Notes under the pieces: model-generated
What the model saw: the letters and a program-made list of their open reading frames with translations, nothing else
What the model was told of the DNA's origin: nothing
Databases searched by the model: none
Translations under genes and position numbers: made by a program
From: Heterodontus francisci
Lineage: Eukaryota
Length of the DNA stretch: 64,000 nucleotides
Direction: 5' to 3'
Assembly (NCBI RefSeq): GCF_036365525.1
Contig: NW_027140807.1
Coordinates: 1-64,000, forward strand
In this document: in pieces, positions 4,367-61,264 of the stretch
How positions within the stretch are numbered: the stretch's first letter is position 1
Layout: every line of letters begins with the position of its first letter

Positions 4367-4379
4367 TCCCCCCTGTCCC
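4367..4379 (-). CDS. TRBD: TCR beta D segment D2 (GGGACAGGGGGGA), open in all three frames (GTGG/GQGG/DRG)
   Basis: 5' 12-RSS (heptamer 4380-4386, nonamer 4399-4407) and 3' 23-RSS (heptamer 4360-4366, perfect nonamer 4328-4336); core matches the conserved vertebrate Dbeta GGGACAGGGGG. Confidence 0.97.
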
Positions 4380-4544
4380 CACGGTGATAGACACTCATAC
4401 AAAAAAGAACGCGAATTTTGCAAGGCCCTGCCTCTGAAAAGACTCCCGAGGGCTTCACTTGGTGAAGTCAGTTGAGATTGAGCTGCTGAAAGTTTTTTAG
4501 TCCTTTGGACCAGAATTAAAGGCCGTTCATTCCGTCTCAAAACT

Positions 4545-13524: not shown

Positions 13525-13537
13525 TCCCTGTTGTCCC
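13525..13537 (-). CDS. TRBD: TCR beta D segment D1 (GGGACAACAGGGA), open in all three frames (GTTG/GQQG/DNR)
   Basis: 5' 12-RSS (heptamer 13538-13544, nonamer 13557-13565) and 3' 23-RSS (heptamer 13518-13524, perfect nonamer 13486-13494); GGGACA Dbeta core. Confidence 0.97.
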
Positions 13538-16190: not shown

Positions 16191-16279
16191 ATTTGCCTCA
16201 GGACACAGTCCAAGGGATAAAGTGTGTCTCACCTGAGAAGGCAGACAAGCCGCTGGTTTAAAATCTCAGGTGCAAATTC

Positions 16280-17318
16280 AGCACTCCCTCTGTACTGACC
16301 CTCTGAGAGTGCAGCACTCCCACAGTACTGACCCTCGGACAGTGCAGCACTTCCTCAGTACTGACCCTCTGACAGTGCAGCACTCCCTCAGTACTGACCC
16401 TCGGACAGTGCAGCACTTCCTCAGTACTGACCCTCTGACAGTGCAGCACTCCCTCAGTACTGACCCTCTGACAGTGCAGCACTCCCTCAGTTCGGACACT
16501 CAGACAGTGCAGCACTCCCTCAGTACTGACCCACTGACAGTGCAGCACTCCCTCAGTACTGACCATCTGAGAGTGCAGCACTCCCTCAGTACTGCCCCTC
16601 TGACAGTGCAACACTCTCTCAGTACTGACACTCTGACAGTGCAGCACTCCCTCAGTACTGACACTCTGACAGAGCAGCACTCCCTCAGTACTGACCCTCT
16701 GACAGTGCTGCAATCCCTCAGTACAGACACTCTGACATGCAGCACTCCCTCAGTACAGACACTCTGCCAGTGCAGTGCTCCCTCAGTACTGACCCTCTGA
16801 CAGTGCAGCATTACCTCAGTACTGACCCTCTGACAGTGCAGCACTCCCTCAGTACTGACCCTCTGACAGTGCAGCACTCCCTCAGTTCGGACACTCAGAC
16901 AGTGCAGCACTCCCTCAGTACTGCCCCACTGACAGTGCAACACTCTCTCAGTACTGACACTCTGACAGTGCAGCACTCCCTCAGTACTGACACTCTGACA
17001 GAGCAGCACTCCCTCAGTACTGACCCTCTGACAGTGCTGCAATCCCTCAGTACAGACACTCTGACATGCAGCACTCCCTCAGTACAGACACTCTGCCAGT
17101 GCAGCACTCCCTCAGTACTGACACTCTGACATGCAGCACTCCCTCAGTACTGACCCTCGGGCAGTGCAGCACTCCCTCAGTGCTGACCATCTGATGGTGC
17201 GGCACTCCCTCAGTACTGACACTCCAACAGTGCAGCACTCCCTCAGTACTGACCCTCTGACAGTGCAGCACTCCCTCAGTACTGACCCTCCAACAATGCA
17301 GCACTCCCTCAGTACTGA
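16280..17318. repeat. 33-bp minisatellite (~31 copies) derived from a SINE core
   Basis: Unit cagtgcagcactccctcagtactgaccctctga; related sequence occurs once, reversed, in the SINE at 18328-18640. Confidence 0.92.
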
Positions 17319-17351
17319 ATTAACGAAATTGGCTGCATTGACGATCGATGG

Positions 17352-17365
17352 GCGGTAGGTGGCGC
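17352..17365 (+). promoter_or_regulatory. Candidate CTCF site facing the V array
   Basis: tggGCGGTAGGTGGCGCta versus consensus tggCCASYAGRKGGCRSta. Confidence 0.55.
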
Positions 17366-18327
17366 TATTGCTCCGCTAATCCTAATCGCTTCTTCATTTC
17401 ACAGCCGCTCCTTCCTCTGACAGCGACCTCAGGTCTGCCATTCCCTCCCAAAGCCCCTCCACATCTCTCTCCTCCAAATCTTCCCAGCTTTGGCCCACAC
17501 CTCCTAACAATTTCTGCTGTAACTCTGTGTCAAATAGTTGGCAGATTTACGCTATTCGGGCCGTTTATCTCGGGACGGTGAAGTCGCTATATAAATGCAA
17601 ACTGCAGCTGTTTAATTACACGCTCGTGCTGACCTGTGAACAGGAGGTTTGGGACTTGGAACATGTCTTCCAGAAACGGACTCTGTCGGCAGTTTCGCTT
17701 GACGTTTCTTCCACGGGGGGAGACGAATTAAACTCTGCATTCACAGAAAATTTGATTCGAATTTGTCATGACCGGGATTTCGCGTCCTGTTGCTATAGTT
17801 TTCAGCACTTGTATCTTGTCGCTTGATGTAACGTCCTCTTAAAATCTATCACCATCCTCCTCACGGTTCACAATACTGCAAAGTTTGCAAATGTGCCCTG
17901 CACACCCAAGTCTATGTTATTAATATCGATCAAGACAAGCAGTGGTCCCTGGAGAACCCCACTATATACCTTCCTTCAGACTGAACACCAACTGTTTACC
18001 ACTACTCTGTTCCATGTTGCTTTGTATCCATGTTGCTAATGCCCCTTTTATTGCATGGGCTTTATCTTTGCTGACAAGCCTGTTATGTAGTACTTTATCA
18101 AACGCTTTTTTTGAAGTTCATGTACACCACATCAACAGCATTACCCTCATTAACCCTCTCTGTTACCTCATCAAAAAATGTGTATCCGACTCTTGGTTTC
18201 CTGATTAGTCTACAGAGTGCTGGTTGTTTCAAAAGGCCATGCAGTATTCATCATCTCCACAGATGGGAGAACCTCAAAGCATCTTGTATGACTGACCACT
18301 TCCTCTGATGTGTCTTTATATATCAGA

Positions 18328-18640: not shown

Positions 18641-18646
18641 TTTCCA

Positions 18647-18751
18647 CCAGGAGATGGCGCAGTACTCCGCAGATCTCGTAGCTGCAAATGGAATTCGAGC
18701 AGATGTCAGACAATGAATTTCCATTCAGCGAGTGATCGCGCCCTCTGGCGG
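18647..18751. promoter_or_regulatory. Cluster of candidate CTCF sites in the V-D interval
   Basis: + strand CCAGGAGATGGCGC 18647-18660, weaker + strand CGAGCAGATGTCAG 18696-18709, - strand CCGCCAGAGGGCGC 18738-18751. Confidence 0.6.
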
Positions 18752-19489
18752 CCGCAGAGGGAATACGATGAAGTCTGAATAATTTTCATCACCATTCACC
18801 ATTTGGATCATTCTTCTGGCGTTACCGAGTCGCAGCCGGAGTGTGATCAATGCTACCTACTTCCAGTGAGATGTAGTATTATTTATTGCCATGTGCAAAG
18901 ATGACCAGATGGTGACAAATGGAGTGAAACTCCCCCCCCTCCCCCACCCACCCCTCCACTAACACTATTGGATCTAAGATGCATCAGTTGGAATTCATTC
19001 CTGGTTATGTGCATTCACCTCACATTGGAATTTCGAGACAGGGTGCCGACTGGGAGTTTTATAACGCTGCTCGATCTTGGACCCTGCAAGTAAAGGGTTA
19101 CTATCTTGTTGGCACGTGGAAAAGACTTCTGATCTGCATCCCTGCAATTTTGCTTCAATAATTAGAGAGCACATTAGCTCAGGATCTCACTTTCGACTTC
19201 ACTCGCATAATGCAGGTTGGAAATGTGCACAGCATCTCGAATCCGTAAAGACTGGGGGAAATCTTAGCGCCGGGAGCCCATTAAAAGTCTTCCACTTAAT
19301 AAAAGCCAAGAAAAAGAAATGACGGCATGTTGTAGATTTCGGGAACTCCAGTCCAATCTGAAAATATCTGGGGCTGTAGCAAAAGTGGTCGAGCAACAGG
19401 GTGAGTAATTTCAATAGCAACATTCTTCTCATTATTGATACTGCAAGAGGGACTCGTGTATATGAACCAGAATAATTTTACATCAATGT

Positions 19490-42130: not shown

Positions 42131-42520
42131 AAATAATTATTTTAAAACTATAAATGAACAGAAGCTGCTTCTTTCGGCAGAAGGCAACCAGGAGACATTG
42201 ATTAAATGTAACTGGCAGATGAATAAGTGGGGGGAGGGGGGAGATGTGATGATTTGTTTAAGCAGCGAGTTGTTATGATGTGGCTAGCACTGTCTGAAAG
42301 GGTGTTGGAAGCACCTTGAACATGAACATTCAAAAGGCAATGGATTGCACACGTGAATGGAATCAATGTGCATGGCTATGGGGAAGTAGCAGGGGGGAAG
42401 AGCATAAACTGGACAGTTCTTTCAAATAAGCCAGTACGGGGGAGATGGGCCGAATGGTCTCCTTCTGTTCTGTTATCCAAGATGATTCCATGAACTGGTT
42501 GCAGAAAATGAGCAGTCAGT

Positions 42521-43008
42521 CTACTGCTGCCCCCTGCCGGTGGAAGATGAGCACTGAGATTCAATCTACTGCTGCCCCCTGCCGGTGGAAGATGAGCACT
42601 GAGATTCAATCTACTACTGCCCCCTGCCGGTGGAAGATGAGCACTGAGATTCAATCAACTGCTGCTCCCTGCCGGTGGAGGATGAGCACTGAGATTCAAT
42701 CTACTGCTGCCTCCTGCCGGTGGAAGTTGAGCACTGAGATTCAATCCACTGCTGCCCCCTGCAGGGGGAAGATGAGCACTGAGATTCAATCTACTGCTGC
42801 CCCCTGCCAGTGGATGATGAGCACTGAGATTCAATCTACTGCTGCCCCCTGCCGGTGGAAGATGATAACTGAGATTCAATCTACTGCTGCCCCTCTGCCG
42901 TTGGAAGATGATAACTGAGATTCAATCTACTGCTGCCCCCTGCTGGTGGAAAATGAGCATTGAGATACAATCTGCTGCTGCCCCCTGCCGGTGGAAGATG
43001 AGCACTGA
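42521..43008 (-). repeat. 45-bp tandem array (11 copies), each carrying a CTCF-like motif, immediately 3' of the V5 RSS
   Basis: Unit ctactgctgccccctgccggtggaagatgagcactgagattcaat; minus strand reads CCGGCAGGGGGCAG; copy 10 is CCAGCAGGGGGCAG (42933-42946). Confidence 0.9.
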
Positions 43009-43067
43009 ACTCCTGTTCATCCGCTGCAGGTTTTTGCAGCTGAGTATCCGCTTTCTCAAACACTGTG

Positions 43068-43934
43068 CAATACTACAAGCGCAGAAATAAACAGCGGTGT
43101 GAGATGGAGCGGCGTCTCTCAGTGCCAAAGTAAACAGCGTATCGCTGGCTCTGACTGCCTTAAGTGACTCGGACGTGTAATTGGTAACAGACCCTTCTGT
43201 AGCAGAATAGAACAGAGCTTCCAGTGCCCTGTCTGGTTGTTGTCTGTACCAGTACATATAGGAATTGGCAGTATTGGTCAGCGTGCATCTGAGTGTTGTC
43301 GACCCTCCTGCTGCAATCGATAGGATCGAGGGTGACTGTTCCACATAGGAGGAGAGTATTCCTGTGGAATGGAACATCGATTAGATTATTATTTCAGTCA
43401 ATAATGGATTGGAGCAGGGGCTGCATTGCAAGAAAGAAAGGGCTTACATTAATATAGCGCCGTTCAGGACCTCCGGACATCAGAAAGTGCTTTGCAACAA
43501 ATGCAGTTACTCCATCAGTACTGCCTATTCGACAGTGCAGCAGTCCCTCAGTACTGCCTCTGCGACAGTGCAGCAGTCCCTCAGTACTGCCTCTGCGACA
43601 GTGCAGAACTCACTCTGTACTGCCTCTGCGACAGTGCAGCACTCCCTCAGTACTGCCTCTGTGACAGTGCAGCACTCCCTCAGTACTGCTTCTGTGAAAG
43701 TGCAGCACTCCCTCAGTACTGCCTCTGCGACAGTGCAGCACTCCCTCAGTCCTGACACGTGGTTTGTCAGCCTTGACATTGAGCTCAAATGTTCTGGAGT
43801 GAGACTCAGACACAGGAGTGTTCCGGACAGAATCACCCCTAACATTACAATACATTATTCGACTCTGTTTCTGACTTTGACTTACGTGGGAACAGGGCAG
43901 GCATCAAGATTAGACAGAGAACTTCGTGCAACAT
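43068..43934 (-). CDS. TRBV: TCR beta V gene V5 (family C): leader 43886-43934 (MLHEVLCLILMPALFP), V exon 43068-43361
   Basis: LRC...WYRQ...AVYFCACS; 23-RSS heptamer 43061-43067, nonamer 43029-43037; GTAAGT donor; intron carries SINE-derived 33-bp repeats (43510-43750). Confidence 0.93.
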
Positions 43935-45347
43935 GATTTCTTCATTCGATACTAACTCGATGTGTGAACGTGTGGAGTTTTCAACAACACACTTGCAGGC
44001 GGTTTCTATATTGTATCCAATTAAATACCCAGCATCCGGTTGTCATTGTGATTGGCAGTCACTTACTGCGACACTCTGCTCCTCCCCATTACTTTACATA
44101 GCAATGTTGTTGAATGATACAACACAGGAGGATAGGGGGAGATTGAATAGAGGTGTTCACATTTCAGAAAGGGATTTGATAGAGTAGAATTCAGGGAAGC
44201 AACCCTCTATACCCAGAGAGTGTGCCCATCCCTTATTGCCCCTGAGAAGGTGATGGTGAACCATCTTCGGGAATACCTGCTGGGCCATATCAGGGCGCAG
44301 TTAACAGTCAACCACATTGCTGTGGGTCTGCAGTCACATATAGGCCAGACCGGGTAGGAATGGCGGATTTCCTTCCCTGAAGGTCATCAATGAAGACGTT
44401 GGGTTTTTAAGACACTCCATGTTCAGGATTACTCATACTTTCCATGACAATTTTTTATTTATTTAATTAATTGAATTTAAATTGCATTTCTGCCCCGGTG
44501 GGAATTGAACTCAAGTCTGGGGATCATCAGTCCAGGCCTCTGGATTACTAGCCCAGTAACATTACTGCCCTGCTGCCGAACCTCTGTGGTGAATGGGAGT
44601 TAAATGGTTAAATTGTTCACTGGTCTGAACTGCTGGCTGCTTTGAAGAACACATTAAATGTGACTCGAGTCTGAGGTGAAAGTGGGTAAAGAGTTTTCAG
44701 CAGCTTCTGAACTCGCTGTCAGGAGGCAGGTGTCCCAGAGATGAAGTTATCTGGAGAGGGGTTTCGCCTTTGAACAGTGTGAAACAGCGCTCAGATGGTT
44801 AATGGTTCTGTGCTGAGTTAGTTCCTGTGCATTGGGGGGTTGTTCGCCTCTGTTTTGTGAAGGTTAGAGGGAGATTAACCAGACTGGTATCAGGGATGAG
44901 GGACTTCAGTTACTGTGGAGAGACTGGAGAAGCTGGGGGTTTCTGCCCTTAGAGCAGAGAAGGTTAATTAGATGTGATACAGATATTGAAGATCACAGAG
45001 GATTTTGATAGATAATTGATGAGAAATCACATCTTCTACTGGTCAATATATAGAAAATCTATGAAAAGATGGTCATTCATTACATTACTGCAGTATGTTT
45101 AATTAGTTCAAACAAACTGTAATTACCTAAAGATAGAGTTAGATAGATAGAGAGACAGAGAGATAGATAACCAGGTAAAGAGATAGATAGATAGAGAGAC
45201 AGAGAGATAAACAATCAGGTGGACAGATAGATATGAACAATAAGCTTCAATCTACTGCTGCCCCCTGCCAGTTGAAGATGAGCACTGAACTCCCGTTCAT
45301 CCGCTGCAGGTTTTTGCAGCTGAGGATCCGCTTTCTCAAACACTGTG

Positions 45348-46215
45348 CGATACTACAAGCGCAGAAATAGACAGCGGTGTGAGATGGAGCGGCGTCTCTC
45401 AGTGCCAAAGTAAACAGTGTATTGCTGGGTCTGTCTGCCTTAAATGACTCGGACGTGTAATTGGTGACAGACCCTGTTCCAGCAGAATTGAACAGAGCTT
45501 CCAGTGCCCTGTCTGGCTGTTGTCTGTACCAGGACCATGTAGGATAGCCAGTATTCTTCAGCGTGCATCTGAGTGTTGTCGACTCTCCTGCGGAAAGCGA
45601 TAGGATAGAGGGTGTCTGTTCCACATTGGAGGCGAGTATTCCTGTGGGACGGAACATCGATTAAATTATTATTTCAGTCAATAATGGACTGGAGCAGGGG
45701 CTGCATTACAAGAAAGAGAGGGCTTACATTAATATATCGCCGTTCAGGACCTTAGGGCATCAGAAAGGGCTTTGCAACCAATGTAGTTACTCCCTCAGTA
45801 CTGCCTCAGCGACAGTGCAGCACTCCTTCAGTACTGCCTCTGCAACAGTGCGGCACTCCCTCAGTACTGCCTCTGCGACAGTGCTGCACTCCCTCAGTAC
45901 TGCCTCTGTGACAGTGCTGCACTCCCTCAGTACTGCCTCTGCGACAGTGCAGCACACCCTCAGTACTGCCTCTGCGACAGTGCAGCACACCCGCAGTACT
46001 GCCTCTGCGACAGTCCAGCACTCCCTCAGCCCTGACACCTGGGGTGTTAGTTTTGACTTTTAGCTCAAGTGTTCTGGAGTGAGACTCTGACACAGCAGTG
46101 TTATGGAACAGAATCACCGCTGACATTACAATACATTATTCGACACAGTTTCTGACTTTGACTTACGTGGGAAGAGTGCAGCCATCAAGATTAGACTGAG
46201 AACTTCATGCAACAT
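45348..46215 (-). CDS. TRBV: TCR beta V gene V6 (family C): leader 46167-46215, V exon 45348-45641
   Basis: Tandem duplicate of V5 at 2280-bp offset, open frame; 23-RSS heptamer 45341-45347, nonamer 45309-45317. Confidence 0.93.
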
Positions 46216-51760: not shown

Positions 51761-52210
51761 TGTATCCCTCTCGAAGGTGATGAATGTGCTTCTCCTGTCA
51801 ATGTGTATGAAGCTCGAGGGCTGTATGATCTCTGCCTCTTTCTGTTTTCCTATTAAATGTTTGCCAGGCCATTGTGTATTCATGGTCCTAGAGCACCCTC
51901 TGTTAACCCTACAGAGGAGGAAAACTCAGTGTCAATGCAGAAGAACTCAAGTCGTTTTATAATTGATCTTTCCTGATAGTTAGAACCTCTGATCTCGTGT
52001 TATCCTTGTCAATTGTTCTTAGCACATTCTCTACTACCTGTATATCTAATCTCTCACTACCACTCTGACCCATCTCTTCTTGTTATCATAAACACTTTCG
52101 CTCTGCAAAACAAAAGAAATTCGAGGCTTCGGGCAGTTTTACCCTCCACAGGTGTTTCCTGCTGCCTTTGGGGTTTTTGTTGAACTGCTCCAACTCTCTG
52201 AGTCACTGTA

Positions 52211-52684
52211 ATCTCTCCAGGTACAGAAATACACTGCCGTGTGATTCTTCCGCAGGCTGGAGGGCTCCAGATTGAACTGGGAGCTAGTCAGTCTCTCGGC
52301 GGTGAAACCGTCCACCGCCTTCTCCGGATTTATGTGATCAGTACCTGTGGAGTAAAACATAAACTGTGGCTCCTTCCCCGGGTATTGTCTGTACCAGAAC
52401 ATGTCAGGGTTACTGCTGCCCTGCACGGTGCATTTCAGCTTCACCTGCTGCTCAGAAAATTTGGAGACAGCGGCGGGAGTCTGGTGGATAGTCTGTGTGT
52501 TCACATCTGGGAAAGAGACATGGAGAGGAGGAGATCAGTAAACAGGGAACTTCAGTCCAGTGGGAGAGAGAAAGAGAGAAATAAATAAATAAAAACATCA
52601 CCTAAAGAAATGTTAAGTAGAATTATTGTTTCAATAAAATGCCTTACGGTGAAACAGGTTGATCAGAGTCAGTAACGGATACAT
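52211..52684 (-). CDS. TRBV: TCR beta V gene V9 (family D), open reading frame but defective RSS: leader 52648-52684, V exon 52211-52506
   Basis: Open frame to YFCTWRD; heptamer 52204-52210 reads TACAGTG (invariant first C lost); nonamer 52172-52180 perfect. Confidence 0.85.
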
Positions 52685-53840: not shown

Positions 53841-54485
53841 CCATCCTTATTTATTTATAACCCAGAAACGCAATGAGCACCAATATAGTGACAGAGCCCC
53901 AAGAACCTAAACCATCCAGCATCTGCGGTATCTTGTGTTCAGTTCACCAGACTGTAACCGGGATGTATTTCTATAATTATCAGGAGAGGTTCATAGACAA
54001 GTTTCAAAGTCCCTATTGAAACATCATCAATAATCTGATACTTATCACGGTCCTACACCGCCCTCTGCTGTCCCTTTGGATAAAGACAACACAGTCGGTG
54101 AATAAAACACAACAGTGTCTGTCTGCCTGCCAGCTATCTATCGACCTATCTCCCTAGCTATCTGATCTTCACTTCACACATTAAACCCTTTCATAATCTT
54201 TCTAAGAACTATGAATGTTCAGCCTTCAGACTTCTCCTTTCTGGAGCAAAGATGTTCAAACTATCTTTGTTCCGATATCATTCCTGTCAAGTCTATTTCA
54301 CAATTCCCCTGTGCTTCTATATCTAACCTCTCACTTTCTGTTTAAATCCGCCCTGTCTTCTTGTGAAAAACACTTTTCCAATGCCAAAAACAACCAACAG
54401 GACGCAGCACAGCCTGGTTTTATCTGAAACAGGTGTTTCCTGCTGCCTTTGGGGTTTTTGTTGAACTGCTCCATCTCTCACTGTG

Positions 54486-54941
54486 AAGACTCCAGGCACA
54501 GAAATACACGGCCGAGTGATTCTCACGCAGGCTGGAGGACTCCAGTTTGAACTCGTACTTATTAATTTTCTCGGCGGTAAAACCTTTCCCCGTCCCCTCT
54601 GGATCCACATAGTTAGCAGTACTGGAGTAAAACATCAACAGCGGCTCCTTCCCCGGGTGTTGTCTGTATCAGTACATGGAGATGCTACTGCTGCTCCCCT
54701 TGACAGTGCACATCAGTTCTACTCCTTTCCCGGGAAATCTGGAGACAGCGGCGGGAGTCTGGTGGATAGTCTGTGAGTTCACATCTGGGACAGAGATGGA
54801 CAGAGGAGGAGATCAGTAAACAGGGAATTTCTGGGAATGAAAGGGAGACAGGGAGAGGAGAGGAAGGTTATTAACAATAATCTTTGCAATTCATACTCAC
54901 TTACAGTGAAACAGGATTATCAGACCCAGTAACAGATACAT
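54486..54941 (-). pseudogene. TRBV: TCR beta V pseudogene V10 (family D): leader 54905-54941, V exon 54486-54784
   Basis: Conserved Trp of WYRQ is TGA (54669-54671); RSS spacer only 17 bp (54462-54478); promoter truncated at ~55031. Confidence 0.9.
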
Positions 54942-59396: not shown

Positions 59397-60430
59397 CTCC
59401 CACTTGGCACTGCCCGATCAAACAGCAAAGGAAGTGGAACAGAGGAAATCAGCTCTGTGACTAACCAATCCGCTCTTTACAAATCATTGAGTAAAACATG
59501 AAGGGCATGAGGAAGTAATGCAGTGTTGGACACGCCCCTTCCACCACCCAACCAATCAGAATGGACGTGGTTGCTTCTGATGGTTGAGTGACTGGAGTAA
59601 GTGTTGTTAACATCCCCAACAAGGGTGTCTGTTGTTCAGTTTCTAATTTACTGATTAGAAATCTCCAATTGTACATAATGAACCTCATCGGCATTCCCAT
59701 ATTAGCCACATGTAGATTTCCAATTATAGACATCTGGATTCCAAATGATCTGCTCCTGTAGGGAATGTATTAGTGCGTGGCTGACTTGACTAGATTCTTA
59801 ATCCACAGCCTCGGCTAGAGTTATAGCGACGTGGGGCGGGGGAGTGGGGGGGGAGGGTGAATCCCACCAACACAGATAATGACATTTCAATGACATTAAT
59901 AATTCTATATTTTCAAAAGAATCTCGTCTAATAATGACCATTGTGGCAACAATCCATCTAGTTCACTGATGTTAGGGAAGGAAATCTACCGCCTTCACCT
60001 GGTCTGGTCTACATGTGACTCCGGATCCACACAATGTGGTTGACCGTTAAATGCCCTCTGGAATGGCCAAGCAAGTCACTCAGTTCAAGGGCAATCAGGG
60101 ATGGGCAATAAATGCTGGCCTAGCCAGCGAGGCCCACATTCCATGAACGAATTAAGAAAAACAGCCAGATGTTGATTCATAAATGGTCAGGTGGGACTCC
60201 TGGCAAACGTTTTCTGCAACATTGGCCCGAGGGATGTAGGTGCAACAATATCTGGGTCACACTGGGCTGCTGATCTATTCGACAGCTTGGTCTGTGCTCA
60301 TTACTGTGCCCATCACCATCAGGGAGGCTCAAATCTACTGCTGCCCCCTGCCAGGGGAAGATGAGCACTGAACTCCTGTTCATCCGCTGCAGGTTTTTGC
60401 AGCTGCGGATACGCTTTCTCAAGCACTGTG

Positions 60431-61264
60431 CGACACTACAAGCGCAGAAATAGACAGCGGTGTGAGATGGAGCGGCGTCTCTCAGTGCCAAAGTAAACAG
60501 TGTATCGCTGGTTCTGACTGCCTTGAATGACTCGGACGTGTAATTGGTAACAGACCCTTCTGTAGCAGAATAGAACAGAGCTTCCAGTGCCCTGTCTGGT
60601 TGTTGTCTGTACCAGTACAGAAAGGAATAGGCAGTATTGGTCAGCGTGCATCTGAGTATTGTTGAATCTCCTGCTGCAATCGATAGGATATAGGGCGACT
60701 GTTCCACATAGGAGGAGAGTATTCCTGTGGAATGGAACATCGATTAGATTATTATTTCAGTCAATAATGGATTGGAGCAGGAGCTGCATTGCAAGAAATA
60801 AAGGGCTTACATTAATATAGCGCCGTTCAGGACCTCAGGACATCAGAAAGGGCATGCAACCAATGTAGGTACTCCCTCAGTACTGTCTCTGCGACAGTGC
60901 AGCACTCCCTCAGTACTGCTTCGACGACAGTGCAGCACTTCCTCAATAGTGCCTCTGTGACAGTGCAGCACTCCCTCTGTGCTGCCTCTGCGACAGTGCA
61001 GCACTCTCTCAGTACAGCCTCTGCGATAGTGCAGCATTCCCTCTGTACTGCCTCTGCGACAGTGCAGCACTCCCTCGGTCCTGACACCTGGGGTGTCAGC
61101 CTTGACTTTGAGCTCAATGTTCTGTAGTGAGACTCTGACACAGGAGTGTTTTGGACAGAATCACCGCTAACATTACAATACATTATTCTGCACACAGTTT
61201 CTGACTTTGACTTACGTGGGAAGAGTGCAGCCATCAAGATTAGACAGAGATTTTCATACAACAT
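60431..61264 (-). CDS. TRBV: TCR beta V gene V13 (family C): leader 61216-61264 (MLYENLCLILMAALFP), V exon 60431-60724
   Basis: Paralogue of V5/V6, open frame to YFCACS; 23-RSS heptamer 60424-60430, nonamer 60392-60400. Confidence 0.93.

Follow-up and report, generated by a model that had tools for sequence, protein, structure and literature searches.

The question raised by this locus is why a minisatellite whose unit carries a CTCF-type motif should lie directly behind the RSS of one V gene, and whether it could bear on the recombination of that gene. The window (the whole 64,000-nucleotide stretch of Heterodontus francisci contig NW_027140807.1 that was analysed) contains 12 minus-strand V exons with 23-RSSs, spread from 22.7 to 60.4 kb, and D-like segments and J-like ORFs at lower coordinates (Table 1). 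The best single-domain PDB matches of V5, the gene in question, are TCR beta chains, and the database search returned a single homologue, a catshark V domain (Scyliorhinus torazame, 62% identity); together with the D/J layout, these results support the TRB-like identity that the sequence-only reading had given the locus. A TRB-like translocon of a cartilaginous fish, with its D-J side at lower coordinates, is a fair reading of the arrangement.

Judged from its sequence, V5 looks functional, with a leader, splice sites (including the AG acceptor that precedes the V exon), an open V exon and a canonical RSS. In the RNA-like run X5, which comes from the sample used for the genome, the depth was ~5000 over 43018-43365 and 43888-43974, covering the V and leader exons, and 4 over the intron. 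Because of this difference the V5 family is taken to be expressed; the X5 contigs mix paralogue variants, and the statement holds at family level only. Over the array the X5 depth was ~50-110, versus 1-3 in the unique flanks and up to 4 in the intron. Among other V genes of the window, the reading frame of V8 (49.9 kb) is broken, and two members of the other V family have impaired RSSs, V9 with heptamer TACAGTG (52171-52222) and V10 with a spacer ~5 bp shorter than in its paralogues (54455-54497).

Structure of the array and grade of its CTCF motifs

The array lies 3' of V5, with a gap of 20 bp between its edge and the nonamer of the V5 23-RSS. TRF described it as a 45-bp tandem repeat of 10.9 copies with 91% matches and no indels, which places it, as a head-to-tail repeat with a unit of 10-100 bp, among minisatellites or VNTRs. 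Aligned in register, the copies are near-identical and the motif sequence of the unit on the minus strand is CCGGCAGGGGGCAG; upstream of the array start there may be a degenerate half copy.

Motifs were scored with a count matrix for CTCF MA0139.1, checked by its column sums (913 down to 908, self-consistent), and exact p-values were computed. Within the array the scan gave p=1.3e-8 once, ~2e-7 five times, and then 8e-7, 2e-6, 1e-5 and 3.5e-5, all on the minus strand. Of the 11 copies, seven thus lie at p<1e-6 and one at 2e-6, with two weak copies and a broken one besides, and the match to this matrix is significant. The tandem array described in the sequence-only reading stands, whereas its 11 CTCF-like sites do not all survive, the PWM grading them as 8 good, 2 weak and 1 broken. 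In copy 10, the best of them, the CpG is mutated to CpA (G to A on the motif strand), which yields the exact consensus. An IUPAC scan of the window for the core CCASYAGRKGGCRS with at most one mismatch returned 12 matches against 0.96 expected from shuffles; seven of the 12 fall in the array, and the one at 42933-42946 is exact, just as had been read for copy 10. The IUPAC scan is in independent agreement with the matrix result.

After correction for composition, only 4 of 20,000 dinucleotide shuffles of the unit attained its score. Its consensus scored 19.2, compared with 16.9 for the FII site of chicken HS4, and departs from the CTCF consensus at a single place, CCG instead of CCA. The chicken beta-globin 5'HS4 FII probe, whose sequence is printed in PMC12885311, has the same CCG variant and the 12-nt half AGGGGGCAGCAG, and agrees with the unit at 12 of 14 core positions. 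HS4 FII, unlike the V5 array, is a lone site from a different locus and species, and the likeness reflects a common binding motif, not homology. The matrix is also meaningful in cartilaginous fish: in the little skate, TAD boundaries are marked by MA0139.1 motifs within ATAC peaks, and these motifs show a bias in orientation (PMC10115646). CTCF's function as a barrier itself appears ancestral to vertebrates (bioRxiv 10.64898/2026.10.19.759930).

Table 1. Positions of the V5 array, its motifs and paralogous units, and of further elements of the TRB-like locus in the window
Feature	Position	Strand	Basis or remark
45-bp minisatellite x10.9, CTCF-type motif per unit	42516..43008	-	TRF, copy register and PWM
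Most distal CTCF motif, copy 1	42525..42543	-	PWM p=2e-7
Further array CTCF motifs	42570, 42615, 42840	-	PWM p=2e-7 each
Further array CTCF motifs	42750, 42705, 42660, 42795	-	PWM p=8e-7, 2e-6, 1e-5 and 3.5e-5, respectively
46-bp copy	42871..42916	-	1-bp insertion in core, PWM match absent; register and PWM
Best CTCF motif, copy 10, CCACCAGCAGGGGGCAGCA	42931..42949	-	PWM 22.4, p=1.3e-8
RSS-proximal CTCF motif, copy 11	42976..42994	-	PWM p=2e-7
V5 23-RSS	43029..43067	-	Heptamer CACAGTG 43061-43067, 23-bp spacer, nonamer GCAAAAACC 43029-43037
V5 V exon	43068..43361	-	Open frame; C23, WYRQ and YFCA landmarks
V5 leader exon	43886..43934	-	ATG at 43934, GTAAGT donor
Single unit behind V6	45243..45287	-	Core CTGGCAGGGGGCAG (45258-45271), PWM p=3.6e-5
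Single unit behind V13	60326..60370	-	Core CTGGCAGGGGGCAG (60341-60354), PWM p=9.4e-5
CTCF-like motif, V1 (22.7 kb)-D1 (13.5 kb) interval	18644-18662	+	PWM p=1.1e-6; facing the Vs
CTCF-like motif, V1-D1 interval	17349-17367	+	PWM p=1.1e-6
CTCF-like motif, V1-D1 interval	18736-18754	-	PWM p=7e-8
GGGACAGCAGAG-type elements	47845, 49598, 54056, 58508, 63300	-	PWM
D-like segment GGGACAGGGGGG	4367-4380 (~4.37 kb)	-	12- and 23-type RSS flanks
D-like segment GGGACAACAGGGA (D1)	13525-13537 (~13.53 kb)	-	12- and 23-type RSS flanks
J-like ORFs	~10.1-10.5 kb	-	FGxGTxLTVLG

Copy 11 ends 34 bp from the V5 nonamer when measured from the 19-mer and 37 bp when measured from the 14-mer core (42978-42991), in accord with the 37 bp reported earlier, so V5 has a CTCF motif 34-37 bp 3' of the RSS of an intact V, facing D-J and well inside the ~100 bp taken for an RSS-associated CBE. 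All motifs of the array are aimed at D-J, as the sequence-only reading held, since the D-like segments and J ORFs share the minus strand and have lower coordinates. The sequence CAGTGC, 6 bp 5' of the 19-mer, may be an upstream half-site, judging by the half-site consensus. The upstream half-site bound by ZF9-11 commonly has one of two spacings, 5 or 6 bp, from the 19-mer (PMC9004084, PMC12885311). Since the N-terminal (ZF3) side of CTCF corresponds to the motif 3' end (PMC12885311), the array would show N-termini to cohesin coming from the D-J side.

At the level of the locus, the plus-strand motifs at 17349 and 18644 converge on the V5 array, which gives the array convergent partners at the motif level. 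The pair at 18644 and 18736 is facing, 90 bp apart, whereas the IGCR1 pair of mouse Igh is divergent. In the 600 bp 3' of the nonamer, a minus-strand PWM match (p<1e-4) is present in nine of the 12 Vs and a plus-strand match in none, against a background in random 600-bp windows of 0.24 for the minus and 0.08 for the plus strand; counted by independent family, RSS-linked matches occur in 4 of 5 (P ~0.01). Strong RSS-linked matches are confined to the V5 array and a V10 site at 54056-54074 (p=4e-7), those behind the other Vs being mostly weak (scores 8-13). Another V family has a second, unrelated CTCF-like element, GGGACAGCAGAG[T/G]GCGCTG, ~260-400 bp 3' of the RSS. Among the copies of this type only 54056-54074 is strong, and the rest carry T where the matrix wants G.

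Paralogues, copy number and CpG decay

V5, V6 and V13 lie in cassettes of 1.4-1.6 kb that are ~90-92% identical, and their homology runs precisely to the distal edge of one 45-bp unit and no further. The unit is present in 11 copies behind V5 and in one copy each behind V6 and V13. The earlier claim that V6 and V13 keep one copy at the same 37-bp offset was correct, but the strength it implied was not, as both units score weakly (Table 1) and their core CTGGCAGGGGGCAG has 2 mismatches to the core consensus. The weak scores are due to a C-to-T change at the CpG, giving CTGG where the V5 unit has CCGG; in the matrix this position is near-invariant.

Of 13 copies, five no longer have the core CpG, namely 3 of the 11 array copies and those of V6 and V13. 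This decay pattern suggests that the core CpG is methylated in the germ line and that selection on it is weak. The decayed C is core position C2, the methylation-sensitive base of the CTCF core. CTCF binding is methylation-sensitive in general (PMC12408068). No motif constraint was seen within the array, where 9 of 209 cells are changed in the 19-bp core versus 18 of 286 in the rest of the unit. In the V5/V6/V13 conservation profile the RSS-distal flank is no better than the cassette average, and the promoter region is the best-conserved part of the cassettes.

The unit starts with GAGAT and the post-array sequence with GAACT, which have a short GA in common, and CACT precedes both; such microhomology at the unit ends is consistent with simple tandem duplication from one copy. 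A private variant common to the neighbouring copies 8 and 9 is the usual trace of local duplication. Amplification of a pre-existing RSS-linked site, as first proposed, is plausible in view of this microhomology and of the variants common to adjacent copies, but contraction is equally possible, in which case the single units of V6 and V13 would be shrunken arrays. The DNA fold of three units was nothing special (z=0.06), which rules out hairpin-driven slippage as the origin of the array, and an Rfam scan of the array returned no known RNA or TE family. The element bordering the distal array end (42409-42495) is moderately repeated (depth ~17,500 in the DNA run), and the outer edge of the V5 cassette was probably set by a transposon insertion there.

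In a short-word BLAST search of the window with two units, the unit was found elsewhere only as the single copies of V6 and V13. In contigs of a DNA run from the same organism, the summed depth over the array was 67-1833 per bin (mean ~700), compared with ~110-140 over the unique flanks, ~700 over the V exon and ~1e6 over the SINE-like repeats at 41.8-42.1, 43.6-43.8 and 44.2-44.4 kb. The depth of the unit follows the V family and lies ~1e3-1e4-fold under that of the neighbouring SINE-like repeats, and its copy number, from collapsed-contig depth, is tens to a few hundred. A dispersed satellite or transposon-borne repeat is thus ruled out, and with it the concern that the 45-mer is a genome-wide satellite unrelated to RSSs. 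Unit-like contigs, together with a V-RSS contig reaching the unit edge, were found in a related species (organism B), and neither kind was found among the contigs of a more distant one (organism D). Unrelated minisatellites detected by TRF in the window include a 44-bp unit x25, a 33-bp unit x31 and a 38-bp unit x18. A 33-bp minisatellite also occupies the leader introns of the V5 family (43509-43754 in V5, 45789-46029 and 60871-61083) and has a 31-copy relative at 16279-17318; its depth of ~1e6 marks it as a very abundant genome-wide repeat, which is also present in other species.

To account for the growth of such an array, ordinary slippage or unequal exchange is enough, and with many other minisatellites in the window the expansion alone needs no function. 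The array may be a neutral minisatellite that expanded by slippage at the cassette edge, its CTCF match the relic of a single site that may or may not have functioned once, and the array itself methylated, unbound and without effect on recombination, a reading to which we give rather less than an even chance. The unrelated minisatellites and the 33-bp array in each V5-family intron agree with it, as do the absence of excess motif conservation within the array and among paralogues, the CpG decay that includes V6 and V13, the duplication trace in copies 8 and 9, and an array GC of 0.53-0.54 with no CpG island over it. On the other hand, chance expansion falling on the one strong CTCF-type site in a 1.5-kb cassette would be a ~3% event, and its convergent partner motifs give it a geometry like that of known loci.

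A possible barrier or loop anchor beside the V5 RSS

We tentatively favour, at somewhat below an even chance, the view that the V5 array is a CTCF barrier or loop anchor beside a V(D)J recombination site. Motif quality, co-orientation, RSS adjacency, the intact V gene, convergent partners and low copy number are shown here and plausibly fit this reading; CTCF binding, methylation dependence, cohesin stalling and any effect on V usage are what we infer. The sequence-only interpretation is accordingly supported in part, while the favouring of V5, the shielding of upstream Vs and the tuning by copy number that it put forward are putative. The CTCF-binding element would be native to the 3' end of the V cassette, ~35 bp behind the RSS nonamer, and behind V5 slippage or unequal exchange would have multiplied it into the 45-bp minisatellite, in which a unit is long enough to hold one full CTCF site (a 19-bp core and possibly an upstream half-site). 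With the single core CpG unmethylated, possibly its state in developing T cells, the array could bind several CTCF molecules, their N-termini turned towards D-J, although simultaneous occupancy of all sites at 45-bp spacing may not be reached. The bound CTCFs would stall cohesin extruding from the D-J recombination centre, or alternatively the array would anchor a ~24 kb loop whose other foot lies on the opposing motifs at 17.3-18.6 kb. In both cases the V5 RSS would be kept close to D-J and accessible to RAG, and extrusion to more distal Vs would be damped.

Two further explanations would leave the array bound yet give it another role. It is improbable that the unit is bound by a factor other than CTCF, for example a recombination-hotspot zinc-finger protein or another lymphoid DNA-binding protein, and that its CTCF likeness is incidental. 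Minisatellites are frequently found at recombination hotspots, and in the zinc-finger version the factor would promote meiotic unequal exchange at the array; the V5/V6/V13 duplicon ends exactly at the unit, as expected if exchanges happen there. The match to CTCF, however, is long and strong (19 bp, p=2e-7), better than the match of the validated HS4 insulator site, and no E-box, ETS or RUNX site was recognised in the unit by eye against consensus sequences. Least probable is a CTCF-bound array that acts mainly locally, as a 0.5-kb nucleosome-free transcribed zone raising RAG access with neither loop nor barrier: CTCF sites do exclude nucleosomes, and the X5 depth over the array, set against 1-4 in flank and intron, is compatible with read-through germline transcription, but that depth, a contig depth that copy number inflates, is no proof of transcription, and orientation and convergent partners, both present, would be irrelevant to such a role.

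Known systems and significance

For the barrier or anchor that we favour, the precedent cited in the sequence-only reading holds: in mouse, a CBE lies immediately 3' of the RSS in proximal VH genes, and VH81X is used less when its CBE is mutated (PMC7930373). Like VH81X-CBE and VHQ52.2.4-CBE, the V5 motif lies tens of bp 3' of a 23-RSS, in V orientation, facing D-J and behind an intact V; unlike these elements, which are single and belong to mouse Igh, it is an 11-copy 45-bp array of predicted sites in a TRB-like locus of a shark. When 20 CBEs were inserted as an artificial array, in inverted orientation, into the VH region of mouse Igh, loop domains changed (cited in PMC7930373). The engineered array and the V5 array are alike in being clustered in a V region, and they differ in that the V5 array is natural, forward-oriented and attached to an RSS.

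With respect to locus type, mouse Tcrb is the nearer comparison. Its Vbeta CBEs sit promoter-side. PMC10772921 describes CBEs interspersed among the V segments, 18 in the V region, all convergent to 5'PC, CBE1 and CBE3 upstream of Dbeta1, and working via V-anchored loops and diffusion-based synapsis, not by RAG scanning alone. The shark locus resembles mouse Tcrb in locus type, in V-side motifs facing D-J and in opposing motifs upstream of D1, and it differs in that the V5 sites are tandemly repeated whereas the mouse CBEs are single sites. Because the mouse Tcrb V CBEs do not act through RAG scanning alone, the Igh scanning model may be the wrong analogue for the shark TRB-like locus.

A structural counterpart is DXPas34 of mouse Tsix, a 34-bp minisatellite with a CTCF site per monomer; species differ in its numbers of copies and of sites (PMC3149622). 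It shares with the V5 array a short period and a CTCF motif in the unit; unlike the V5 array, it is CpG-rich, belongs to the X-inactivation centre and has no connection with RSSs or V(D)J recombination. The closest analogues are distributed over three systems, the proximal VH CBE being the functional one, mouse Tcrb that for the locus and DXPas34 the structural one. Our literature search on CTCF sites in shark antigen-receptor loci found no paper. An RSS-linked CTCF-type element is known from mouse, and its predicted minisatellite form behind shark V5 appears to be new, no paper describing it having been found.

If the arrays are unbound, the V5 array is one more minisatellite in a repeat-rich locus. 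In mouse, single CTCF sites by V RSSs decide V use by stalling cohesin-driven scanning. Should shark TCR beta Vs carry a device of this type, the link between RSS and CTCF would be common to sharks and mammals, by ancient inheritance or by convergence, and the natural arrays of 1, 1 and 11 copies would constitute a dosage series relating CTCF number to extrusion and repertoire. We consider it unlikely, though worth stating, that V choice in the TCR beta loci of cartilaginous fish is set by a heritable dial, namely RSS-attached CTCF minisatellites tunable by copy number. The array would then be a graded cohesin barrier, whose length would set how often the V and those beyond it encounter the D-J centre.
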